A stretch of DNA of 63,110 nucleotides, counting the filler, from Octopus bimaculoides (taxonomy: Eukaryota), in assembly GCF_001194135.2 (NCBI RefSeq). It is 6 parts of 6 records of this genome, joined end to end, with 100 filler letters (N's around TTAATTAATTAA, not from the genome) between each part and the next. Parts side by side here need not be neighbours in the genome. Positions count along the whole stretch, not along the records: positions 31,592 to 46,024 come from NC_068982.1; 5 more parts are not named here. One strand, given 5' to 3'. The position numbers were made by a program, and so were the translations under genes. The notes beneath the pieces are model-generated. The model did no database searches and was not told the DNA's origin. It was given only the letters and a program-made list of their open reading frames with translations. Shown here piece after piece: positions 1 to 46,398 of the stretch. Position 1 is the stretch's first letter, and each line of letters opens with the position of its first letter.

Positions 1-348
1 GTGAAGACACGTGGTCAAGTATTTACAATGTTGTACTTATGAATTCTAAATTGTGGTTTCAATTCCTGGACTGTGTTGTGTTCTTGAGCGAAACACTTCA
101 TCTCCCATTGCCCCAGTCCACTCAGCTGTAAATAGTTAACCCTTCGACATACAACCTTTCTGATCAGGGAGAATGCCTGGCTGCTTATCTAGCCAACTGG
201 GTTGCATCATTCGATAGCTAAGATAATGCAAAGTGCATTGTGACCAGTGATGTATAGTCTGGTTGATCTGGTAATCATGTGATATACATACATGCACACA
301 TACATACACACGTACATACAAACACACACACACATATACATACATACA

Positions 349-8753: not shown

Positions 8754-8939
8754 TTAATTATTAATTAATTACTGTTTACCGTTACAGTATTACCTTTATG
8801 GTTTTTTTTTATGCATGCTATGCCACTTGATATGTGACTCTAAACAATAATATCCTTACACACACACACACACACACACATACACACACACACACACACA
8901 CATACACACACACACACACACACATATATATATCTTTTA

Positions 8940-31491: not shown

Positions 31492-31647
31492 NNNNNNNNN
31501 NNNNNNNNNNNNNNNNNNNNNNNNNNNNNNNNNNNTTAATTAATTAANNNNNNNNNNNNNNNNNNNNNNNNNNNNNNNNNNNNNNNNNNNNTCTACATTT
31601 GTATTTTGTCCCCTCTGTGTTGAGCCCTGTGTGGCTAATAAAGAAAC

Positions 31648-31717
<70 letters not shown>

Positions 31718-32489
31718 GTCTGTCTGTCTGTCTATCTATCTATCGATATCTCTGTCTCTCTCAATATATATATATATTGGGAATGCAATTGAAGAAAAGT
31801 TAGCAATAGGTTTAGCCTAAAGTTAAGAGCTTTAAAAAGCTGTCAGGAGTTATTGCTATAATCCAACATTATGTAGTCGTTTGGGGAAACTTCGACTTCT
31901 TCATTATTGAACCCTATTAGAACTTAATTAAGCTACGACAATAATTATTTATCATATAATCAAACTTGGCATGCTACCACACGTAGCAAATACGTATGTC
32001 TAGTAGCATGAGATATAGAAACAAGTTGCATTTGCTAGTATTTTGACTAGTATGGCCCTCAGCCATTAATCAAATTTCTCCAATTATACTGAAAAGGTAA
32101 GACAGCGAAAAAGCTTCTACGGGATCACTTATGCGATTCTGACAAGTGTGCTTTGAAACATGGCTCATCTTCAACTACTGTAACGATGACACTCGTAAGT
32201 GTGCAATAACTGCAAAAGAATTCTATGCAGTTGAGATATAGATTCCATAAGGTGCAGCGAAGGGGACCTAAAAAGAAGTGTAATATATTTGACTGAAATT
32301 CTGTGCCGAAAAAAACAGACTTTGGAAGCCATGGCAAAAGCAATCGTCCAGAAGAGGAGCAAAAGCTATGAATAAAACTGACGAGTGTTGAGACTTTAGT
32401 GTTGATAGACAACTTCCCTTCTATTGATATGATAAATTGCACCTATGAGTCTATGGTGTAAACGCTTTGTTGATAGAGCAGCCAAGTAA

Positions 32490-32703
32490 TGGTTTCCAAT
32501 TTTGGCTCAAGGCCATAACTTTGGGGGAGGAGTTAAGTCGATTACATCGACTCCAATGTTCAATTGATACTTACTTCATCGATCCCGAAAGGATGAAAGG
32601 CAAAGTCGACATCGGCGATATTTGAATTTAGAATGTTAAAACGGACGAAATGCTGCTGAGCATTTCGTCCGGCGTGCTAATGATTTTGCCATCTTGTTGC
32701 CTT
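32490..32703 (-). mobile_element. SINE family B
   Basis: gaaaggatgaaaggcaaagtcgac...cggcgtgctaatgattttgcc; possible TSD agagca at 32475 and 32704. Confidence 0.8.
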
Positions 32704-33829
32704 AGAGCAACCCAATTCTAAAACCATGCCCAAATTTATGACAATCTCTAATACAATGAAAGCCCTTTGTGCGCACACAGGACTGGCATTTACAGAGTTA
32801 GAGCTGCATATGATAATGGGGCGATCAAGGAGAACGTCTCCTCTCATCTTCAAGTCATCACAAAATTTTAGCCATGGTACTTTTACTTTCAACCGACAAT
32901 TTGCAAATGCACTCCCAGATACACTCTTCCTGAAAAAAAAAAACCGGGAGTCACAACTCGAGTACTTTTGATCATAAGCTTGTGGTTTTAAAGCTGACCT
33001 GCGCAAAAGAAAAAAAACACCTTTATTGAAGGATGGCTTACGTATAGAGATGCTTGCTTGCTCCGTAGATACAATATAAAATATAATAAAATGACTAGTT
33101 GTTGTCATGGTTTAGTGTTGTTTATCGTTTTTGAGCAGATCTATGGTTAAAACTATTTCAACAGCATTTATCCTCTCTGCCTGTATATCTAGAACTATAT
33201 GGTCTAATATACTCCTCCATTTTGTTTAATGGAAGCGTGTAATTTTAGTAAAATTTGACTGCTATTTCTTGACGGTCGAACCCCAACTTAGAATCTGTCA
33301 CATTAGCTGTTAAAACCATCGATATTTGTAATAAATGAATGCTATCCTGTAATTTCAATTTTTGTTTTAGTGATACTGAAAAAAAACATTGAAATTTGCT
33401 TAAAATTTTAGTAAATTATGTTTTGGGGGAAAATTTTCTGAAAATTTTCAAATATTGATCACTGTACGTAACTAATTATCAAGAAAGAGAAGATGCAAAT
33501 TTGAATATCAGTTTTAAGACTTAATTGAAGGAAATTAATATGTTTGTGTTTCATTTATCTGAAAATTAAAAGCAGCAAATATACACATACATACAAGGTA
33601 AAAATATCGATATATTATCTTTCATTCTTTTATAGCTAGTAGACATGTTTTTACAAAGACTAACACATATAAATGTTATGTTTATATGACTATGTCTGTG
33701 TGTATCTATGTATCTGTGTGTGCGTATGTGCGAGTGTATGGAACAGCTGTTAATTCTTTATGCCTGAATGCGTAAGTATGTTTGTTTACTTGTTTGTGTA
33801 TGCCCGATTGCCACCACCACCACCACAAC

Positions 33830-34075
33830 CATCATCATTTAACGCCCGCTTTCCATGCTGGCAAGGGTTAGACGGTTTGACAGGAACTGGCAAAACAAGG
33901 AGCTGCATCAGATCCCATAGTCAGTTTTAGCTTGACTCCTACAGCTGGATTTCCTTCCTAACGCCAACCACTTCGCAGAGTGTACTGGGTGCCTTTTACG
34001 TGGCACCATTACAAGTGCTTTTTCTGTGGCACCATTACCAGTGTTTTTTTACATGGTACAGCATCAGTGCCCTTC
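33830..34075 (-). mobile_element. Family C element
   Basis: atcatcatttaacgcccgctttccatgctgg...ttccttcctaacgccaaccac. Confidence 0.75.
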
Positions 34076-35443
34076 ATTGACAAACATTACCAAAGTGGTT
34101 TCAGGATACCAATTCTGTTCTGTTCTTTTGAAGTGATCTGTTCATTTTGAATACAGCAGAGTGCCATATACTTGGGTTCTTTGTCATCGCCTTCGTAAGG
34201 CTCGGCGTTTCAACATCAGCCTTCACTACTTCCTGAATCTCCCTCTTCCACAACTTCCATCCATTTTAAGTGATCGGTAACTTTCGATATTTTTAAATGC
34301 AGCATTTATGTGAATAAGTAGGAGAAAGAGAGAAAGAAAACAACAAAACAAGAGAACAAACAAATAAACAATACATACATCTAAAACGCTACAAAAATGT
34401 CAATGTTTTATAAAAAGAAATGTCATATAATGCCTTTTCTCAGTCATTTTGTAAAAACTAGTGTCGTTGAGGATTGAGGCTTTGTTAGTCTGTCACTGGC
34501 TCATCGCATTTTTAATGGAGGAAGTGACAAGAGAATGTCTATGCAACCTGAAAAGTAAATACCACAAAGAATTTTGTGCAACAACACCAGTTTATGCACA
34601 GCTCCTTTGCAAATGTGTCTTTTACCATCACACACACACACACACACACACAGACATTCCCAAAATGCATCAGGCATGAAACTTTTAAGCATGAATTTAA
34701 CAAAGTGCTCAATAGAGTGAGCTTAGCCTAACTATCAACTTGAGGCTATAGCAGAGGACTTTTGCCCAAGTTGACACATATTGAGATCGAATATGGGGTT
34801 CTCAGTTTAATACAATTGTACAAACACTTTGAGAAATTATCATCCATCACAGACATACTGACCAATATCTTGTAAGTTACGTTTGGTACTAGCGAAGTAT
34901 CATTGACATTATAGAATATAATGTGGAGAATAACCATACTGATCGACTCTGTACAGTATTTTCAGGAAATAATATTGCGTTGAGTCAAAAGTTTTGCAAT
35001 TAATTTCTTTCCTTTATTCATCGAGTTACAACAAAAGCGGCCGAGCATTCGAAGTAGAGGCCATCATGTTGTACCACCTTTAATCCCACATTGATATTAG
35101 TTCCTGTTCTTTGATGCAAAGACCTCTTTCACTGAAGCTGAAACCGCCTCTTGGGTGACGAAGCGTCACGAACACAAGTAGTGAACCATGGATTGGAACA
35201 TGTAATAATCCAAAGCAAATATTTTTCTTCAGTCCTAACAAGCATAAGTAGTGGCTAAGCAAGGGCCACCTTCAAGTATCAGTTACCAAACACGGGCCTT
35301 TTGAACACAAAGTAATGCTCTGCGTCTAGTGGGATAATGAAGGCGATAATTCACTACGAGTTCATTCGAACCTGTATTCCAGATAAATGGACTAGATATA
35401 TGCCACTGTGTGCAAAACTAATTGGCATTGGTTAACAGAAAGT

Positions 35444-35659
35444 AATACGACTTTCAGATGCCTGGTCAAGTAGGAGGGCGCCGCGGCGTGCATGGAAGCT
35501 GCGGGCGCGAGCCCGGGTGAAGCCTACCACGGGTGCAGATCTCGGTGGTAGTAGCAAATATTCGAACGAGACCTTCGAAGACCGAAGTGGAGAAAGGTTC
35601 CGTGCTAACGGCGGTCGAGCACGGGCCAGTCGGTCCTAAGAAGCGGGTGAAAGCTTCAA
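35444..35659 (+). rRNA. Isolated 28S (LSU) rRNA fragment, D6-D7a region; a retrocopy, not an rDNA unit
   Basis: agtaggaggg...gggtgcagatctcggtggtagtagcaaatattcgaacgagaccttcgaagaccgaagtggagaaaggttccgtgctaacggcggtcgagcacgggccagtcggtcctaag aligns with the conserved eukaryotic LSU core; GC-rich island in AT-rich DNA. Confidence 0.92.
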
Positions 35660-35881
35660 AAGGCGGCGAGCTGGTAGAAACGTTAGCACGCCGGGCGAAA
35701 TGCTTAGCGGTATTTCGTCTGCTGCTACGTTCTCAGTTCAAATTCCGCCGAGGTCGACTTTGCCTTTCATCCTTTTGGGGTCGATAAATTAAGTACCAGT
35801 TACGCACTGGGGTCGATGTAATCGATTTAATCCCTTGTTTGTCCCCTCTATGTTTAGCCTCTTGTGGGCAGTAAAGAAATA
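35660..35881 (+). mobile_element. SINE family B, full length and young, tail type 1, fused to the 28S fragment
   Basis: aaggcggcgagctggtagaaacgttagcacgccgggcgaaatgc...gtgggcagtaaagaaata. Confidence 0.92.
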
Positions 35882-36818
35882 AGAAAGTGAGGTCTTCTGT
35901 AGCAAGATAATGCAAGACCTTGTGCCACTTGAACAACCCAGAATAAACTCCAGGAACTTGAGGGGATCGAACTGATGCAGCACCCAGCATATAGTCTGAA
36001 CCCAGCTCCCTCGGATTATTATCTATTTGAATCCATGACTCACTTCCTGCGCTCGCAACATTTCATCAATCCAAGTGAAGGTGGTAACTTCAGTGAATGA
36101 GTTCTTCACCTCGAAGGACAAAGACTAGTATTAGCTTGGGATCAAAAGACTGGAAGAACGGTCGCCCCAAATGGAGCAACACGATGGCCTCTACTCTGAA
36201 TGCTAGGCCGCTTTTGTTGTAACTTGACGAACGAAGCAATAAAATATTGCAAAACTTTTGGCTCAACACAATTCACTGCTGTATATTTGAGTATTTTCCA
36301 CAACTTCCTACAGACCAGCAGCGGTTTCAAATGCAGCACCAGAAATTTGCTAAAACAATCATTACTAATAACATTTTCTCTTCATTCTTTACAAGAGTTA
36401 GCTATACATAGTTCACAATACCTTATTATTTAGAAATTGGTCAACGGAGCTAATGAGAGTCATGTCAAAACACCAGACATTACACAAAGGGTATGAGATT
36501 ATTTTGCATAAAAGATGCTATAAAATAAAGACAGATGTCCACTTTCTGTAATCTATTCATTTCCAGAGAAATGATAAGCATGATTTATGGCGATTTCAAT
36601 GACAAGGAAACAGATGATAGTAGAAAGATAACAAAGTTTAGCATCAAAATATTATAGAAAATTACATGTAAGTATTATATAATTCAAAGTAGCAGAAACT
36701 TTACCAATTTCTCATGGAACAAAAGTTGCGAAATGTCTTGGCACATATTTTGAGTTTGAGAAAGAAATATGAAAGTAAAATTAAGATATTTAAAAACATT
36801 TGAACCCAGGTCAAACTA

Positions 36819-36866
<48 letters not shown>

Positions 36867-36967
36867 GAGCACTCACAAATACTCGAACACTCACACACAC
36901 ACATACATAAGAATATGCAAACCTAAACTCTCTCCCTCTCTCTCACGCACACATTTATGTTTTAAGA

Positions 36968-37160
36968 CAACAAGTTAGTAGAATCATTAGCTCATGAGAC
37001 ACAATGCTTAGCACCATATCTTCCAGCTCTTTATGCGCTGAGTTCAAATCCTATCGCAGTCAGTTTTACCTTTCGTTGTTTTATGGTCAAAGTACTGGTG
37101 GTCAAAGTAATCAACTAACGCGACCCCTAAAATTGCTGGCCTTGTGTCAAAAATGAATAG
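36968..37160 (+). mobile_element. SINE family B, diverged
   Basis: gtagaatcattagc...gagttcaaatcc...gctggccttgtgtcaaaaatg. Confidence 0.65.
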
Positions 37161-37210
37161 ATAAAAGCATTTAATTGCAAGAAATATATATAAAAAGAAA
37201 CAACAAAAAC

Positions 37211-37268
<58 letters not shown>

Positions 37269-37373
37269 GCATACATACATGTGTGTGTGAGAGAGAGAAA
37301 GAGAAAGAGAGAGAGAGGGAGTGAGAGAGAGGGGGAGAGAGTGAGAGAGAGAGATAGAGAGAGAGTTTATATA

Positions 37374-37957
37374 TACGAGATCTGATCAATCAGTATCCAG
37401 ACTTGCCAAAGTAATAAAGCTAAACTATGCAGAGTGAAGCCGCTGGGCACAGATTGCGTTTGAAGTCTGTTTCCATGGGCACTAAGTTTCAACGTTCCAG
37501 CTCACTTCCACTGATTTCACCAGTGCTTGGTAGGAAGGTGTGTAGTGTGTGATCGTTTCATTGACAATTACAGAGAAAGTTGTCATGGCAATACTTGCTC
37601 AGAGGCCTACGTAAATTTACAGAAAGTGTATGGAGAGGTGCGTATGAGCCGCACACAAGCGTATGAGTGGTTCAGACATTTCCCAGATGGCCGAAAAATG
37701 TTGATACTGACGAACGTTCTGGAAGTCCTGCAATCAGTAGAACTGAGAAAGACAACGCAAATGTGCGTGCAGCTGTGAGTTGAAAATCGTCGAATCACCA
37801 ACCGTGAGTTATCAGAGGAGGTGCAGATTAGTTACGGTTCAGTTCAGTCCATTATCACAGAAGATTTGGGTATGAAACGCATGTCTGTCAAGTTTGTGCC
37901 AAAACTGCCTTCAGCTGACCAAAATGACACTCAGGTTTCAGTTGCACAAGATCTCCT
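37374..37957 (+). mobile_element. Mariner transposon 5' part (TIR plus HTH region of transposase), cut off by a family A SINE
   Basis: TIR-like tacgagatctgatcaatcagtatccagac; NTCSEAYVNLQKVYGEVRMSRTQAYEWFRHF and ENRRITNRELSEEVQISYGSVQSIITEDLGMKRMSVKFVPKL. Confidence 0.85.
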
Positions 37958-38112
37958 TATTCTTTGTAAGCCTAGTACTTATTCTATCGGTCTCTTTTGC
38001 TGAACCAGTAGGTTACGAGGACGTAAACACACCACCATCGGTTGTCAAGCGATGGTGAGGCGACAAACACAGACACACACACATATATATATATGACGGA
38101 CTTCTTTCAGTT
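37958..38112 (-). mobile_element. SINE family A fragment followed by long (TA)n
   Basis: ttattctttgtaagcctagtacttattctatcgg...gacggacttctttcagtt. Confidence 0.8.
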
Positions 38113-38140
38113 ACACACATATATATGTATATATGCATAT

Positions 38141-38291
<151 letters not shown>

Positions 38292-39540
38292 TACATATAT
38301 TTGTATATATATGCATATTTAATGCATATATGTATATCCATGTATGCATGTGTGTAAAAGCATTATATACATGCTTCTGTACCAAATACATATAAATACA
38401 AGAGCACACATTTATATCTCTACATCATGGCACCTCAATATACACTTCGCTTATAGCTGTGTATTGTGTATAAACATTACTCTATCAGCTCTGCAAACTT
38501 CATTTCCCTTTAAACACATTGATTTTTCCATGCATTGGTAGTAATTGATATCACTTGAGAATTTTAATTTCTTCATATTTTTCAACCTCCTTAAAAGAAT
38601 GTGATAATTATAAAACGATAATAATGCTGATATTTTTATCATGATAATAACGTTGTGTGTTTACTAACAAAGGAAACTGTTTCATATTTCAATTAGAACC
38701 AAAAATAAAATTAAAATATATAAGAATCAAAGTGAAGAGAAATTGCATCATTATTGAATATAAATAGGAATTTACGTAAGTTTTCATAATTCCCTTTAAG
38801 TTTTTGTTTTTTAATCAAAAATTCCTTTCAACATTTCACATTGTTTCCAAATCAATAGCTCGCTTCTTTTATTTGCTAATGATATCTATACATACATATA
38901 CGTTTTGATAATTATATAGCAGTTGATGAGTGGCAAGTTTGCAGATACAATAATGCTGGACTAAATACCTTGCCCTGTATAAGTTTAAAGTCTGCTAGAA
39001 CCAGATTTGATTTAATTCACTGTTTCTTTCCTTGCATAACTTTCCATTGTGATTAGAGAAAAGGAATCAATAATTGTACATTGGTTTAGGAGGAAGGAAT
39101 TGGCAGAGAAAACTAAAATGCCTGATTAAGAGTATTTGGGTATTTACTTTCATCTTTCTATGTTCTGGGTTCTAATCACATCAAGAGTCATTTTGATTTT
39201 CACCGCTCTTTGAAGTCAAATTTTGTCAATAATGGAATGGAATTATTTTGGTAAGAGGACATGTTCACATGTAGCTGATAATTTTATCATGAGAGTAACA
39301 TTGTGTGTTGTCTTTAATTCTCCAGCATGTGTCTGTTTGAAACCTAATCAAAGTAAACCAATTATTTATCAGCATAATGGCCAATGAAGAAGCCTTTAAA
39401 AAATCATTAGACCTACAAGAAATAGAGAACAAATCTTCCTCAAAACTCACCCTACAATTTTATGAAGAGAAAGGCAAACAAATCTTCCTCAAACGTCACC
39501 TTACATTTGACGGATATTTGTCCCCATCTTGTTTGTTGTT

Positions 39541-39586
39541 AACACAATGTTTCGGCTGATATACCCTCCAGCCTTCATCAGGTGTC
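39541..39586 (-). ncRNA. Minimal type I hammerhead ribozyme motif (family 1)
   Basis: gacac CTGATGA a ggctg-gagggtatat-cagcc GAAAC att gtgtt; stem III palindrome ACGT decayed to ACAT. Confidence 0.75.
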
Positions 39587-39691
39587 TTGGGGAAATTTTG
39601 AACCTGGGTTCTCATTCCTAAGGTATTTTTCGATGTTATTATTATAGTTCTATATTTAAGAGATGAGAAAGTATGTACATTATTTTTCCAC

Positions 39692-39737
39692 GATACCTGA
39701 TGAAGGCTGGAGGGTATATAAGCAGAAACGTTGCGTA
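39692..39737 (+). ncRNA. Hammerhead motif (family 1), degenerate
   Basis: gatac CTGATGA a ggctg-gagggtatat-aagca GAAAC GTT gcgta. Confidence 0.65.
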
Positions 39738-40624
39738 AACAACAAACAATATGAGGACAAATATCCATCAAATGTAAATAATGTTATTATCATTATTATT
39801 ATTATTATCATTATTATTATTATTCAGGTCACTACCTGGAATCGAACTCGGAATCTTGGAGTTAATAGCCCGTGTTCTTAACCACTATGCCCTATGCCCG
39901 TGTTTGTTTGTTTCTTCCTTTCCTTTCTTCTTTCATTTTCCTTCCGATCTTATTGATACTTGTCCATGCATTAGATCTTTTTACTTTGACAGACTTGTTT
40001 CAGTTTTATCTACACAGATATAGTTTTTCATGTCCATTGCAAAGATCACAAGCATTTTTTGATGAAATTAATAAAGAAAACGTTATGAAGCTTTAAAGTT
40101 TGCCATCATTTGTAGTTTTAGCCACACAGGTCAACTTCTTCTCAACATCCCATCCAGCAGATGATGCTATCTGTACATGTTCCCAAACAGATGAAACCAT
40201 CTTGGCTCTGGCTTAGAGGTTAAAGGTTATAGCTAGTGTTTGGGGCTGTGTTAGAATTTAATTTAATTAGTTTAGTATCAGAGTTCACGGTTTTCCCATA
40301 ATATTGCCATGTCATGTACAGAATGGATAGATCTGACTGGCTAAAATTACCAAAATTTTCAATCTTTGAATATATAATATTTAATTGATAGCAACAGAAG
40401 CAGTATTAATACCAAAGACAATCTTTATCTTCAGCTCAATGTGGATAAGCCCACTGGCTATTTGTGATATCAGTATCTAAATAGACAATGAAATTCTGTA
40501 TATCGTTGATAGAAGGATTTAGCTGCTATGTTGCTACTAAATATGTGCCATTGAGGAGCCCAAGCAGGGTGAAATTATGTGATCTGGAAGCTCTGGCAAC
40601 TGTAGCAGATGATACTTATCTGTC

Positions 40625-41215
40625 AACGATATGAATACAAGTGTTTTTATGCACCACGAGTTCAAATGAGTTGCGGTAGATTATACAAAGGCGAAACATG
40701 TCGTCCCCTTAAAATAAGAGTAGAGGAACATCGTAAAGCTGTGACACGAGGGGATATTGAAAAATTGGGTATAGCTGATCATGTATGGAAAAATGGAGAC
40801 CACCTCCCCCTGTAGGATGAAGTTAAATTAATAGACGGAGAATACCACTGGAAAATATGAAAACTAAAAGAGGCAGCACATATGCTAGGACACAACAACC
40901 TCCTAAGCAGACTTAGTGCAGATATGAGTAGAATATGGGAACTAGTATTAAGAAAAGATATTAGGTTTATAGGCCCTAAAATTCACTCTATAATTACCTA
41001 CAAGCATATAGCAGGCAGGGACTTGGGAAATAGTGACAACAGAAAAAATGACATCAGCAAAAGGAATACCTTAGGAATGAGAACAGAGGATCCTATTAGT
41101 CAAATAAAGGGTTGGATTCAAAATTTCACCAGAACACCTGATGAAGGCTGGAGAGTACATCAGCTGAAACATTGTGGTAGCAACAAACAAGGTGAGGACA
41201 CCTATCCGTCCATTG
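40625..41215 (+). mobile_element. Penelope-like element 3' part: GIY-YIG endonuclease reading into an HHR-containing pseudo-LTR
   Basis: SCGRLYKGETCRPLKIRVEEHRKAVTRGDIEKLGIADHVWKNGDHLPL*DEVKLIDGEYHWKI*KLKEAAHM; the same frame continues to NTLGMRT...TPDEGWRVHQLKHCGSNKQGEDTYPS across the HHR. Confidence 0.88.
41133..41178 (+). ncRNA. Hammerhead motif in the Penelope tail
   Basis: aacac CTGATGA a ggctg-gagagtacat-cagct GAAAC att gtggt. Confidence 0.7.
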
Positions 41216-41246
41216 TACTATATTTTTTGATGTTAGATAGATTTTA

Positions 41247-41439
41247 CAGTTCTATATTTAAGAGATGAGGAATTATGTACATTATTTACATTTGATGGAT
41301 ATTTGTCCTCATCTTGTTTGTTGTTAACACTACATTTCGGCTGATATACCCTACAGCCTTCATCAGGTGTCTTGGAGAAATTTTGAACTTGGATTCTTAT
41401 TCCTAAGGTATTTTTCAATGTTATTATTATTATTATTAC

Positions 41440-41491
<52 letters not shown>

Positions 41492-41618
41492 GTTATTATT
41501 ATTATTATTATTATCATTAGTATTTTCTTTTCTTTTCTTTTTTTCAGGTCACTGCCTGGAATCGAACTCGGAATCGTGGGGTTACTAACCTGTGCTCTTA
41601 ACCAGTACATCATATGCC
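41247..41618 (-). mobile_element. tRNA-head/(TAA)n/hammerhead SINE, full length, tail-to-tail with the Penelope fragment
   Basis: Head ggcatatgatgtactggttaagagc...gagttcgattccaggcagtgacctga, (TAA)n, body, HHR at 41371-41326, 3' end ...cttaaatatagaactgta. Confidence 0.9.
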
Positions 41619-43397
41619 TGTGTTTTGCATATTGTGGACATCATGTTCATTGCTGACTAAATTCTATCCAATAAAGTAAAATAAAGATGAGAGCTCCCAT
41701 GGTAGTATACATATATTGCATAGTACACAGTAAAGGATGTATTGTAAAGTTTGGAGTCCAATGGATGTCAGAAAATATTTCACTTCTGAACAAACACCTA
41801 CCATGCACAATAAAGTATTGCTCAGATATGAAAACTTCTTCCATTATTACACACTTTTAATCCGACCTAAACGAAACTCATCAGTCAGATAAATAAATCT
41901 TCACTATGTTGCTGTGGAGTGTTGTAATTGTCTTTGTAACGATGGATCTTCTTGTATACCATTTCTTTTACCTTCATCTATCTTCCCCTACTCTCAAAGA
42001 GAAGAACTTTTCCATTTAGAACTTGTAATATCTTGGAAACTCTTCATGGAGTCACAAATATTTCTCTCCTTTATCAAAAGATCAACATTTATCATATTAA
42101 TCTTATCTAAAAGTCCTTTCTAGACAAAGAAGACATAAAAAAGTCCATGGACACTTTCCTTCCTCTCATACGTAAGCTACAAAAGAAATCCATTATATTT
42201 CATATTCTAAAAATTGTAGGATTTTTCTTTTAAAGTTCAAACAGTAGATTTAATCAAAAAATATTATCAACTATGAAAAGAAGAGAAGTATAATTTTACC
42301 GTAGAAAAATAAATAGTGCGTAGTATTGTTCATTCTTTCACAAGCATCATTTGAAATGTAAGTGAATCATTTTAACTGCAAATCTAAAGCACATCATGGA
42401 TTCAGTAGATTATGAATTGACCATTGTGACGTCAGCTATCATGATGCCTGTCACCGGTAAAAGAAGACAATGTAAACAGAATATTAACATCAGCAAAGCT
42501 GTATACTGAATCAATATTTCCTGATAGGAATCCCCTAAACTACACTTGATTACATTATATAGTTGTATAATTTCAAAACAGGCTCCTTTCTGTCTATCCA
42601 CTGAATTTATAATTCATCAAATTATTGCAGTGTTTCATATTTATGATATATATGGAATGCTCTTTCTTTTCCTATGATGTGGTCCTGATGCAGTGATGCA
42701 GTCCAACCATCTATCATTAGAATATTATCTTGTAAAGATTTATCTTTACAACAAGAATAAAGAAAATGAAGAAAAATTGCCAGACTTTTGTACTGGATAA
42801 TTTTTTACTTATTTTTGTTATTTTACGTTTCTCCAATCAGTAAGTTGTGGCCATGCTGGGTCACTGCCATCATATGAAAATAAATTTTTTTTAGAAAGCG
42901 GAAATGATAATTCTTTTGTTTTTAAAAGGTCTTAATACTGATTTCCATTGAACAAATATAAACCAACTTCAGTGGAGAAAAAATATAATGAATAAACGAA
43001 TCCAATTGTAATGCAGGTATTTAATTTATTGATTGTCGAAGGACAAAAGATAAAAATTAACCTGTTTTAATCCTGAAATCCAAAAATATAGCTGGGAAAA
43101 AGTATAAGGCTGAAATGCATTCCACTATTTCTGCTAACTTACCTCTCTAAGTTCAAGGAGTCCTTTAAAGTGTAGCATGATCTGGTAGAAATAGTAGACA
43201 AATTTCCCTCAAATCATACCTTGCTGTCTCAAAGGAATACAAATAAACATTATATAATGTATTTTTGCATATACTCTTTGAGACAAAATCTGGGACAGCC
43301 ACAACTCTAGCAACTTTCATCATAAGTCTGTTCATTGACCTGAGTGAAAACATCTCACAATTCACTGCTCGAATGTTTTTTTAATATGACTCCTTAT

Positions 43398-44032
43398 TAA
43401 GGTGGCGGAATGTTAGCATGCTTAGCGAAATGCTTAGCAGTATTTCATCTGTCTTTACGTTTTGAGTTCAAATTCTGCCAAGGTCATCTTCGCCTTTCGT
43501 CCTTTTGAGGTCAATAAATTAAGTACCAGTTGCGTACTGGGGTCGATCTAATCGACTGGTCCCCTCCTCAAAATTTCTGGGCCTTGTGCCTAGAGTAGAA
43601 GAGAAGCGTTAGCTCGCTGGGTGAAATGCTTAGCAGTATTTCATCTGTCTTTACTGTCTGAGTTCAAATTCCGCTGAGGTCGACTTAGCCTTTCAAGGTC
43701 AATAAATTAAGTACCAGTTGCGTACTGGTGTCGATGAGATCAGCTTAGCCTTTCATCCTTTCGAGGTCAATAAATTAAGTACCACTTGTGTACTGGAGTC
43801 GATCTAATCGACTGGCCCACTCCCCAAATATTTCAGGCCTCATACCTAGAGTAGAAAAGAAACGTTAGCACGCTGGGTGAAATGCTTAGCGGTACTTTGT
43901 CTGTCTTTACATTTCAAATTAGCTTTTCATCCTTTCGAGGTCAATAAATTAAATACTAGTTGCGTACTGGAGTCAATCTAATCGACTGGTCCCTTCCCCC
44001 AAAATTTTGGGTCTTGTGCCTAAAGTAGAAAA
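43398..44032 (+). mobile_element. Head-to-tail trimer of SINE family B (tail type 2) inside one TSD
   Basis: Three units ending tagagtagaa/taaagtagaa; flanks aatatgactccttat (43383-43397) and aatatgattccttat (44033-44047). Confidence 0.8.
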
Positions 44033-44193
44033 AATATGATTCCTTATCACTAGACGAAAGAGATTCAGATTTACAGGTGAATAAATGAAGTGTAGTAACA
44101 TTCAAGCTTTTCCCATGTATGTGATAATCAGAAATAAAACAAAGTAACTTCTAATGGCATTCGAAACTCTGCTTCATAAACATCAGCTTATAA

Positions 44194-44392
44194 CTCGGTT
44201 TCAAATTTTGGTACAAGACCAGCAATTTGGTGGGTGAGGAGGTAAGTTAATTACATTGACCCAGTGTTAAACTGGTACTTATTTTATCGACCCTGAAAGG
44301 ACGGAAAATAAAGTCGACCTTGGTAGAATTTGAACTCAGAATGTAAAAGCAGAAAGAACACCACTAAGCATTCTGCCAGCTCCCTGCCTTAT
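44194..44392 (-). mobile_element. SINE family B with 12-bp TSD
   Basis: TSD atcagcttataa at 44182-44193 and 44393-44404. Confidence 0.85.
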
Positions 44393-44916
44393 ATCAGCTT
44401 ATAATTTACAATTTAATCTTTCTCAGAACAAATATTTATATATTTATACTAATTTCTTGAATTATGAAAAAAAAAAACAAAAAAAAAACAGAAATGCGAT
44501 GAAATTAATGAATTATTTAATTGGTTTTATTTTTATCTGAAAACTCTAATTTCCTTCAATATCAAAAGTAACTGGGTACAACTTGTTAGTTCAATATGTT
44601 CGGAGTTTTGAAACAAGGTGAAAACACTAATTAGGGAATAATCTTATTTATTAGCAATAGACATCGATTATCTTAATGATATTCCAACTACAGAATTTGC
44701 AGAGAATCTTAAAGGTTAATCTGTTTGTCATATTGCTTATGCCTTTCATCAGAGTTAATACTGCAAAAAAAAAAAAAAGGAGAAAACTAGTAAATAGTAA
44801 CAAGTCCTTCTCAATGGAGTTAAAGACCAGTTATGATATATTAGAATTTAAATCTTAAGGCATGGTTTCTTCATAGCAATATACTAAATATTACTTTAAA
44901 CCTGATTTTAGTTTTT

Positions 44917-45017
44917 ACAGTTCTATATTTGAGAGATGAGGAATTATGTACATTATTTATATTATTTACAATATTTACATTCGACAGATATTTGTCCCCA
45001 TCTTGTTTGTTGTTAAC
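44917..45017 (-). mobile_element. Inverted 3'-tail fragment of the hammerhead SINE
   Basis: tacagttctatatttgagagatgaggaattatgtac...tttgtccccatcttgtttgttgttaac is the reverse complement of the element's last ~100 nt and abuts the head of the next copy. Confidence 0.85.
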
Positions 45018-45018
45018 A

Positions 45019-45088
45019 GGCATATGGTGTAGTAGTTAAGAGTGCGGGCTACTAACCCCAAGATTCTGAGTTCGATTCCGGGCAGTGA

Positions 45089-45156
<68 letters not shown>

Positions 45157-45303
45157 TCGAAAAATACTTTAGGAATGAGAACCCAGGTTCGAAATTTCCC
45201 CAAGACACCTGATGAAGGCTGGAGGGTATATTTGCTGAAAGGTTGTGTTAAGAACAAACAAGATGAGGACAAAAATCCGTCAAATGTAAATCATGTAAAT
45301 AAT
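45019..45303 (+). mobile_element. tRNA-head/(TAA)n/hammerhead SINE, clearest copy
   Basis: A box TGGTGTAGTAG, anticodon-like loop CT-ACT-AA, B box GAGTTCGATTCC (45019-45093); (TAA)n to 45153; body; HHR 45204-45249 gacac CTGATGA a ggctg..ttgct GAAA g gtt gtgtt. Confidence 0.9.
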
Positions 45304-45564
45304 GATTTTCGTTTGAATTCTAACTTAAAAAAGAAAACAGTTGTATATAATTGGCACTGATTTTTCGGAGTTGTCATTCCCTATTGCTATCAAATATACT
45401 TGATTAATATGTAATATATATGCATGTAGGAAGGAATGTATTTATGCATAGCTGTGCCTTTTTCTGAGTTTATATATGGAACATATGCCAGTGGATATAT
45501 ATATGTATATATANNNNNNNNNNTATTGCTGACATGGCCGATGACAGTTCCGCCTGATTAGCAC

Positions 45565-46013
45565 TCGTGCCAGTGGAACATTAAAAGCACCATCCAAATG
45601 TGATCGTTGCCAGGGCGCTGATAGGCTCCTATGCTAGTAGCACGTACAAAGCACCATTCAAGCGTGATCGTTGCTAGTGTTGCCTTACTTAGCACATGAG
45701 CCGGTAGCATGTGAAAAACAACATTTGAGCGTGATCGTTGCCAGTGCCGAAGGACTGGCTCCCGTGCAGGTGGCACGTAAAAAACACCTTTTGAGTGTGG
45801 TCGTTGCCAGTACCAACTGACTGGCCCTCATGTCAGTGGGACGTAAAAGCACCCACTACAATCTCGGAGTGGTTGGCGTTAGGAAGGGCATCCAGCTGTA
45901 GAAACTCTGCCATATCAGACTGGAGCCTGGTGCAGCCTTTTGGCTTGCCAGTCCTCTGTCAACCCATGCTAGCATGGAAAGCAGATGTTAAACGACGATG
46001 ATGATGATGATGC
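45565..46013 (+). mobile_element. Family C element with 4-5 tandem 5' modules
   Basis: Repeated gtgatcgttgccag modules, aggaagggcatccagctgtagaaac core, gttaaacgacgatgatgatg tail. Confidence 0.85.
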
Positions 46014-46398
46014 ATATATATATANNNNNNNNNNNNNNNNNNNNNNNNNNNNNNNNNNNNNNNNNNNNTTAATTAATTAANNNNNNNNNNNNNNNNNNNN
46101 NNNNNNNNNNNNNNNNNNNNNNNNTATATATATATATATATGCTTGTGTGCATGTTTGCGAATGTGTGGCGTTTGTTTGTGTATGGTGTGCGTTTACGTG
46201 TATTTGTGTCTGCACGCTGACGAGTGAGTGTATGCCCACTACAGACGCGTTCTTCTCGTTTTCTCTGTTTTTCAGGAAATAGCATCAGCCTTTTCTAGCG
46301 TGTTCGTATATTAATGAACATTTTGTTGCGTTTGAGTCCTCTGGTGGTCAGATTCCCTCGAAAGCATTTCATCCACAAGATGCTGTGTCTAAGCGTAC

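Follow-up and report, generated by a model that had tools for sequence, protein, structure and literature searches.

A SINE of octopus as a probable cut-down copy of the repeat and gene start of Penelope-like elements

In a 63,110-nucleotide (nt) stretch of Octopus bimaculoides DNA (NCBI RefSeq assembly GCF_001194135.2; hereafter the window), the remnant of a Penelope-like element (PLE) runs into a sequence that also forms the tail of a short interspersed nuclear element (SINE), and a complete copy of this SINE lies just beyond it in the opposite orientation. The locus raises the question of how a SINE with a tRNA-like head came to share its tail with a PLE, in which direction the sequence passed, and which machinery copies the SINE. 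SINEs are normally explained as parasites of long interspersed nuclear elements (LINEs), with which they share the LINE 3' tail. Having compared the piece of the window that comes from NC_068982.1 (positions 31,592 to 46,024) with related loci (designated L001 to L010) and homologous proteins, we consider it likely that this SINE is a cut-down copy of the repeat-plus-gene-start region of a PLE, and that a PLE mechanism lies behind its insertions. The SINE thus probably borrows the copying enzyme of the PLE.

A PLE remnant that ends in the SINE tail

A single reading frame spans 40609-41268 and is interrupted on translation by two in-frame stops, TAG at 40813-40815 and TGA at 40858-40860 (both + strand). 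Within this frame, 40642-40962 (+) encodes a linker together with a GIY-YIG-type endonuclease at the C terminus, recognized by translation, tblastn and protein matches as the remnant of a PLE open reading frame (ORF). The top protein matches were PLE fragments from Octopus vulgaris and O. sinensis, with 74% and 73% identity, respectively. PLE proteins with both a reverse transcriptase (RT) and a C-terminal endonuclease (P0003, P0024 and P0037) aligned by tblastn to 40642-40962 only, and the window copy is therefore 5'-truncated, with a homology that may reach ~40612 at its 5' side. No RT was detected upstream of the endonuclease remnant by tblastn of RT-bearing PLE proteins; the homologues P0003, P0024 and P0179 do carry an RT (PF00078), located upstream of this endonuclease. 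No inverted partner accompanies the window PLE copy.

The GIY-YIG label is a soft one. It is based on the motif CGRLYKGETCRPLKIRVEEHRKA (YKGET..R..EH), which is present in the window remnant, on the Joint Genome Institute (JGI) annotation of one homologue, P0007, as GIY-YIG, on the family context, and on a weak enrichment in Foldseek, where GIY-YIG folds made up six of the 12 top matches, all of them non-significant (E ≥ 0.34). The AlphaFold model of the endonuclease had a predicted local distance difference test score (pLDDT) of 67. Pfam recognized no GIY-YIG domain in the window copy or in intact relatives, and a sequence search of the PDB for this domain gave no match. Taken jointly with the origin of the SINE proposed below, we regard it as likely that 40642-41217 represents a dead, 5'-truncated copy of a canonical endonuclease-bearing PLE.

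Three segments follow the endonuclease. The first, at 40958-41002 (+), is a conserved post-ORF spacer (ATATTAGGTTTATAGGCCCTAAAATTCACTCTATAATTACCTACA) which, in alignments to relatives and to L009, was common to all related PLE copies. The second, at 41003-41064 (+), aligns as the remnant of a tRNA-like module that has kept both ends and has lost ~50 nt with the promoter boxes A and B; it is followed by a degenerate linker, at a place where relatives carry a microsatellite. The third, at 41077-41217 (+), is what was taken for a SINE tail, and we read it, from translation, alignments and the ORF continuity of L006 described below, as the first 47 codons of the PLE ORF (MRTEDPISQIKGWIQNFTRTPDEGWRVHQLKHCGSNKQGEDTYPSIV). 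The 3' end of the element is at 41217. As had been noticed in a sequence-only reading of this locus, the PLE remnant is colinear with the SINE tail, namely over 41065-41217 (the full alignment begins at 41029), with 81-82% identity to SINE copies over 41117-41217, and PLE and SINE share the translation NTLGMRT..TPDEGWRV. That reading had also remarked an extra segment of about 20 nt in the PLE; the segment is there, with a length of 27 nt, or nine codons (EDPISQIKG, 41086-41112).

If the tail were an old SINE fragment that had landed behind the ORF, other copies of the element would lack it. They do have it: the tail occurs at the same post-ORF position in L001, in two copies of L002, and in L003, L006, L009 and L010, and it is therefore integral to the PLE, as first suspected. 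Across this clade, the stop codon is followed by a ~45-nt spacer, a tRNA-like module with boxes A and B, often a microsatellite, and the next ORF start. In L001 (O. vulgaris) and the two L002 copies (O. sinensis), the endonuclease ORF and the ~45-nt spacer are followed by a complete forward SINE sequence, i.e., head, (AAT)n and tail. The more distant L003, L006 and L010, taken from ENA assemblies and with ~55-72% endonuclease identity, possess the same spacer, a diverged tRNA-like module with boxes A and B, and the tail; a (GCA)n tract occupies the place in L010 where the octopus family has (AAT)n. Spacer and module are also present in L004, the contig of which ends soon after. L009, a sister copy, shares with the window PLE the spacer, a head that has lost a part, the 27-nt segment and the tail, with 76.5% identity over 40909-41217, and its module is better preserved than that of the window copy.

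From these alignments, we conclude that the module and the tail can be regarded as ancestral parts of this PLE clade, and that ~50 nt of the module have disappeared from the window copy. The part shared with the SINE, which had been thought to be the tail, extends further: when set against the relatives, the SINE is colinear with the PLE 3' region over its full length, tRNA-like head and microsatellite position included. The window copy, which groups with L009 in a sister sublineage that has a partly deleted head and no (AAT)n, did not itself donate the sequence directly; nearer to the SINE stands the L001/L002 sublineage. Diverged tails preceded by (ATA)n and (GAT)n were observed in L007 (1-160) and L008 (60-230), from Logan SRR11869394 and SRR11869389, respectively, so that a microsatellite seems to recur in this unit between the head and the start of the ORF.

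Coding capacity and structure of the shared tail

The decisive locus for the nature of the tail is L006, a near-full-length PLE with one frameshift, the forward copy of which begins within the hammerhead region. There, the tail peptide HRPKRCEYNNKDEDNSPNNLDN is followed in an unbroken frame by TNNQASSQKFRK..LTFLYRCRDLKLVPPGL.., which belongs to the N-terminal domain, and then into the RT and the endonuclease. At the 3' end of the same locus, a start codon (MVNGMRT...) occurs ~50 nt past the tRNA-like module. On these grounds, what was called the SINE tail corresponds to the first ~40-75 codons of the PLE ORF and not to a non-coding pseudo-long terminal repeat (pLTR). The tail is open in every SINE copy because it derives from this ORF start, and the distance from ATG to the short 3' end of the SINE is ~117-124 nt.

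A word-indexed protein search with the 67-amino acid (aa) tail peptide gave no candidates, and a profile search of 1.84 billion representatives gave 131 matches, nearly all of them short tail ORFs, with no long PLE protein beginning with the peptide; the continuity of the ORF was therefore established on DNA, in L006. Two proteins from another species, P0050 and P0052, are ORFs made of head-to-tail repeats of ~38 aa (114 nt), each of which begins with the hammerhead and closes where the 3' extension ends. In that species, the unit at the PLE ORF start thus exists also as tandem, retrozyme-like arrays.

The same segment bears a ribozyme motif. In the window PLE tail, CTGATGA...GAAAC occurs at 41138-41169, within a minimal PLE-type hammerhead motif at 41133-41178 (+). 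According to the descriptor of Cervera and de la Pena (2014; PMC4209133), the minimal PLE hammerhead has the core CUGANGA...GAAA, in which A9 is followed by a nucleotide that stays unpaired, G10.1 pairs with C11.1 and 15.1-16.1 is a palindrome (ACGU), together with H17, a helix I of 4-5 bp, and no helix III. The window motif comprises the helix I 5' strand (41133-41137), CUGAUGA (41138-41144), an unpaired A, helix II (41146-41165), GAAA (41166-41169), CAUU, and the helix I 3' strand (41174-41178); it is decayed, with 11.1 C to U and 16.2 G to A (both CpG-type changes) and a helix I of 3 bp. The SINE consensus, by comparison, reads GACAC / CUGAUGA / unpaired A / GGCUG-loop-CAGCC / GAAA / C-G-U-U, cleavage site, GUGUU, and satisfies the descriptor, as do L001 (at 5920) and L006 (helix I of 3 bp). 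In the hammerhead helices, 82.7% of cells were paired, compared with 18-50% in slid controls. We regard the hammerhead motif as real and of the PLE type on the basis of this fit. The idea of a canonical helix III was dropped after attempts to build one manually had failed.

A second, long-range structure concerns the 3' ends. Pairing is possible between AGAUGAGGA (41190-41199), which immediately precedes the short reverse-transcription start site, and UCCUCAUCU, which belongs to the 3' extension (41250-41262 region, SINE A), and the stem enclosing this start site is kept in L001, L002, L003, L005, L006 and L010. A G-C to A-U exchange distinguishes families at this stem, with covariation not above that of shuffle controls. 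This stem may serve as a hairpin recognized by the RT. A pattern scan also found canonical type I hammerhead motifs at ~95-140 (-) of L006 and ~8855-8905 (+) of L005, with 4-6-bp helices and a palindromic loop 3 (ACGU/AGCU); these are of the retrozyme type and unrelated to the PLE tail motif.

Origin and insertion of the SINE

Repeat analysis, which found the SINE repeat families independently, identified at least four copies of one SINE in the piece examined (A to D), and a 23-nt head motif had three matches in the window versus 0.00 expected. A full SINE consists of a 76-nt head with boxes A and B, an (AAT)n block, and a tail of ~140-185 nt. SINE A, which is complete and inverted (41238-41620, -), is composed of a ~42-nt 3' extension with a long-form end that contains UCCUCAUCU (41238-41279), the ORF-start-derived tail (41280-41422), in which the minimal hammerhead (41371-41326) is intact, a block of purine-rich sequence and (AAT)n microsatellite (41423-41542), and the tRNA-like head with its box A/B region (41543-41620), the 5' end of which was placed as in other SINE copies. 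SINE B (39501-39900, -) has its tail at 39501-39637 and its head at 39823-39900, and unit C lies inside the (AAT)n of SINE B as an inverted extension (39642-39685) followed by a forward, 5'-truncated tail (39682-39784). In the SINE D unit (44909-45302, +), an inverted tail and extension fragment (44909-45018) stands head-to-head with a full forward SINE (45017-45302) that has a short 3' end; the unit is flanked by the target-site duplication TGATTTT(A/C)GT at 44903-44912 and 45303-45312. A 32-nt direct repeat with 88% identity (39428-39459 and 39477-39508) abuts and overlaps the 3' end of SINE B; it could have arisen as a duplication of the target, or represent another form of the 3' extension.

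The heads contain a box A, TRGCNNAGTGG, and a box B, GGTTCRANNCC, with a spacing of 44 nt, and 17 such pairs were found in the loci versus 0.46 expected. Three full SINE copies of ~285-400 nt have 5' ends within ~2 nt of one another and upstream flanks unrelated to the PLE spacer; the truncation points of PLEs, unlike this discrete 5' end, are scattered. The shared 5' end, the unrelated flanks and the conserved boxes suggest that the SINE may be transcribed independently by RNA polymerase III (pol III). As a lead only, the head (GTAGTGGTTAAGAGC.CGG.CT, e.g., 45025-45092) resembles MIR/CORE-SINE heads and the extension (TTCCTCATCT..CTGTAAAA, e.g., 41238-41279) the 3' part of the CORE domain; the family might be one of the octopus 'tRNA-Core' SINEs.

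Several features of the insertions point to the PLE mechanism. The 3' ends in octopus loci fall at tail positions 136-137 (n=2, including the window PLE), 142-151 (n=5) and 174-185 (n=7), i.e., in two or three clusters ~40 nt apart, which match the optional 30-40-bp 'tail' extension of PLEs. An inverted partial copy often precedes the forward copy, as seen in L001, L002, L005, L006 and L010 as well as in SINE units C and D, and the head-to-head unit of L005 lies within one 14-nt target-site duplication. Most head-to-head units have a long 3' end on one arm and a short one on the other. This includes L010 (3005-6721), a symmetric head-to-head PLE pair with 449-aa ORFs on opposite strands. Both the single-event structure, in which copies lie head-to-head with their 3' ends outward within one target-site duplication, and the asymmetry of the arms have been described for PLEs (PMC8557442). 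Frequent 5' truncation and head-to-head partial copies or pLTRs were found in the relatives and the SINE units, SINE C had inserted into an (ATT)n tract, and repeat analysis detected no tandem copies of the hammerhead unit in the window. Taken together, the 3'-end classes, the head-to-head units and the microsatellite target point to a PLE-type insertion of the SINE.

We propose the following mechanism. Since PLE reverse transcription would start inside the ORF, every new insertion would end with the ORF-start segment, which bears the minimal hammerhead motif, an AC-rich hairpin and the RT start sites, predicted at ...AAAUGUAA / AUAAUG and ~40 nt downstream. The SINE would be the part of the PLE unit that begins with the tRNA-like module, at its 5' end, and stops at these start sites. 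It would be transcribed alone from its internal pol III promoter, its RNA recognized by the PLE protein through the ORF-start segment, and the product inserted by the PLE mechanism. Such an origin would explain the open frame of the SINE, its two 3'-end classes, and its head-to-head partners within one target-site duplication. The direction of transfer that was first assumed, from PLE to SINE, is favoured: nine codons that are kept in the window PLE, L009, L003, L006 and L010 are absent from the SINE, which, lacking what distant PLEs retain, is therefore the derived form. The rest of the initial proposal, capture of the tail from the pLTR of this PLE, needs correction: the tail is read here as an ORF start, and the L001/L002 sublineage is nearer to the SINE than this copy.

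Several observations weigh against this account. The ORF continuity was seen in L006, which belongs to a related family and not to that of the window, and no full-length octopus PLE was among the copies obtained. The ratio of nonsynonymous to synonymous substitutions (dN/dS) of the tail ORF, at 0.3-0.9 between decayed copies, is weakly below 1, so that the coding argument rests on L006. ARAGORN found no tRNA on any head and the Rfam tRNA covariance model matched neither the piece, 40980-41440 and four of the loci nor, even with E up to 10, the isolated heads; the term tRNA-like therefore rests on the A and B boxes and partial arms. Pol III transcription and trans-mobilization are steps that we infer. 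No Rfam hammerhead model matched the piece, 40980-41440 or four of the loci (E up to 1-10), a miss that is expected because the minimal motif has no helix III; we initially took it as evidence against a hammerhead, and reversed this view in the light of the minimal descriptor. The one compensatory pair in the hammerhead helices (U-A to C-G, in L006) does not exceed the shuffle control, in a region that is also coding. The L010 family carries G12 to A in both arms and yet has many copies, and the ribozyme may therefore be dispensable. Finally, no convincing target-site duplication was found for the window PLE, for SINE A or for the pair as one unit, which leaves the order and the independence of the two insertions unproven.

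SINE A, which had been placed about 30 nt beyond the PLE, does lie there as a full inverted copy; it begins 20 nt past the PLE 3' end at 41217, with 20 nt of AT-rich DNA (CTATATTTTTTGATGTTAGA, 41218-41237) between the two opposed 3' ends. The suggestion that homology may have guided priming at this site finds no support, as the intervening DNA is non-homologous and PLEs begin reverse transcription on targets to which they have no homology (PMC11167929). A single PLE event is unlikely, because such an event gives a head-to-head structure with the 3' ends outward. The pair most likely represents two separate insertions at one AT-rich site. A rather unlikely, though not negligible, variant is that the second insertion was targeted, the PLE endonuclease or ribonucleoprotein recognizing an existing PLE 3' junction and the SINE being inserted beside it. 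According to published accounts, PLEs may land within or beside copies that are already in place, with a preference for existing PLE junctions; the endonuclease of D. virilis needs the 'tail' sequence for recognition; SINE C lies within SINE B; and, by a rough estimate from ~5 SINE copies in 14.4 kb, a SINE end would fall within 30 nt of a given point by chance in ~1% of cases. Against this, the pair is a single case picked post hoc, the PLE 3' ends of L001, L002a, L003 and L006 have no adjacent inverted SINE, SINEs occupy ~10% of this DNA, AT-rich sites are in any case the favoured targets, and the junction shows no homology.

The origin of the SINE from the PLE can itself be turned around: a tRNA-derived SINE might have inserted into the 3' region of an ancestral PLE, the chimera then being amplified, with flow from SINE to PLE. 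The 3' region of L001 and L002 cannot be told apart from the SINE, down to the (AAT)n and the deletion of 27 nt, and a comparable origin, by SINE insertion into the LTR, has been proposed for Helenus (PMC10886601). We nevertheless find this improbable. The tail is PLE coding sequence that is continuous with the N-terminal domain and cannot have originated in a SINE, the PLE-type tail retains the nine codons that the SINE has lost, and diverged tRNA-like modules occur at the same position in PLE families with only ~55-65% endonuclease identity, such that a capture of the head would have to predate the clade. Still less probable is that there is no separate SINE and that each short copy goes back to a PLE transcript cut short or processed at the tRNA-like module, for instance through RNase P-like cleavage or an RT stop, and not to a pol III product: the SINE layout is identical to that of the PLE 3' region and PLE insertions are heavily 5'-truncated, but the common start of the three full copies, with flanks unrelated to the PLE spacer, argues for an element of its own, and the A and B boxes are well conserved where the cloverleaf is not, which favours promoter function over RNase P recognition.

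The piece contains other repeats as well. At 35470-35880, a ~170-nt fragment derived from 28S rRNA (Rfam LSU_rRNA_eukarya, 65.7 bits) is fused 5' to a tRNA-type SINE of another family, copies of which also occur at 32528-32703, 43409-43555, 43605-43751 and 44260-44377; the fusion looks like an rRNA-SINE chimeric retrocopy. Four tandem repeats of ~66 nt, with 64-77% identity, occupy 45554-45810.

Known systems and significance

A close parallel to a PLE-derived SINE, as regards mechanism, is PAc, a Poseidon element of Anolis carolinensis (Penelope/Poseidon clade) that was studied in vitro by Frangieh et al. (2024; PMC11167929). In PAc, insertion requires RNA that is contained in the ORF's first 172 nt, reverse transcription begins at an internal position 111-118 nt past the ORF start, and two start sites give rise to an optional 'tail' of 30-40 bp (PMC11167929). 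PAc resembles the octopus unit in that the pLTR-ORF junction forms the 3' end of insertions, with an RT start ~110-120 nt inside the ORF, two start sites, a hammerhead near the ORF start, AT-rich (ATT) targets, and both strands able to prime. It differs in that no tRNA-like module or SINE derivative has been reported for PAc, and in that its hammerhead overlaps the start codon, whereas that of the octopus unit lies ~55-60 nt downstream of the ATG.

Non-autonomous elements with a hammerhead are represented in schistosomes by the SINE-like retroposons Sm-alpha and Sj-alpha, reportedly described by Ferbeyre in 1998 and Laha in 2000. Like the octopus SINE, Sm-alpha and Sj-alpha are short and non-autonomous, with a pol III-type promoter and a hammerhead motif (reviewed in PMC6765202), and schistosome genomes with Sm-alpha also hold hammerhead-bearing PLEs, termed Cercyon (PMC6765202). 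Sm-alpha differs in having a canonical type I hammerhead and a tendency to be tandem, and neither colinearity with a PLE ORF start nor a PLE-borne tRNA-like module was described for it in the literature that we found. Animal non-LTR retrozymes are likewise non-coding derivatives of the repeat region of hammerhead-bearing PLEs, presumed to use the PLE RT (PMC7229834; bioRxiv 10.64898/2026.07.22.740005). They consist of tandem 170-400-nt repeats, form circular RNAs and have no pol III head, whereas the octopus element is dispersed, tRNA-headed and SINE-like.

LINE-SINE pairs with a common 3' tail, e.g., MIR/L2, are said to go back to the work of Ohshima and Okada in 1994. These pairs also combine a tRNA-type head with a 3' part common to the autonomous partner that supplies the RT; in octopus, however, it is a PLE that acts as partner, what the two have in common is the 5' coding end of the partner's ORF, and the partner carries the head as well. 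Helenus and Cassandra have a pol III promoter like that of a small-RNA gene, tRNA-like or 5S-like, within their terminal repeat (PMC10886601), but are non-autonomous LTR elements, whereas the octopus module lies in the pLTR of autonomous PLEs. In the literature searched, which left Repbase and subscription-only papers outside, there was no report of an octopus SINE tied to a PLE, or of a tRNA-like module in a PLE pLTR.

The case described here points to a SINE with a PLE as partner, the tail of which is formed by the first ~40 codons of that partner and the tRNA-like head of which was already present in it. It offers a natural, sequence-level confirmation, in a mollusc, of the in vitro result that PLEs begin reverse transcription within the ORF and thereby produce two alternative 3' ends, and it suggests a route by which SINEs may arise directly from an autonomous element. 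We put forward more tentatively that there is a clade of cephalopod-type PLEs with a built-in tRNA-like pol III promoter just upstream of the start codon, and that a major octopus SINE family is amplified by PLEs and not by LINEs. Octopus genomes are unusually rich in SINEs, most of which are unclassified (PMC13282606). If the proposal is true, a SINE master gene would lie ready at the 3' end of every PLE, and the PLE machinery might be behind much of the ~10% of the genome that is annotated as SINE, mostly as 'unclassified'. The assignment of a SINE family to the PLE machinery would change the reading of cephalopod repeat expansions, and would make a large natural collection of PLE insertion junctions available.

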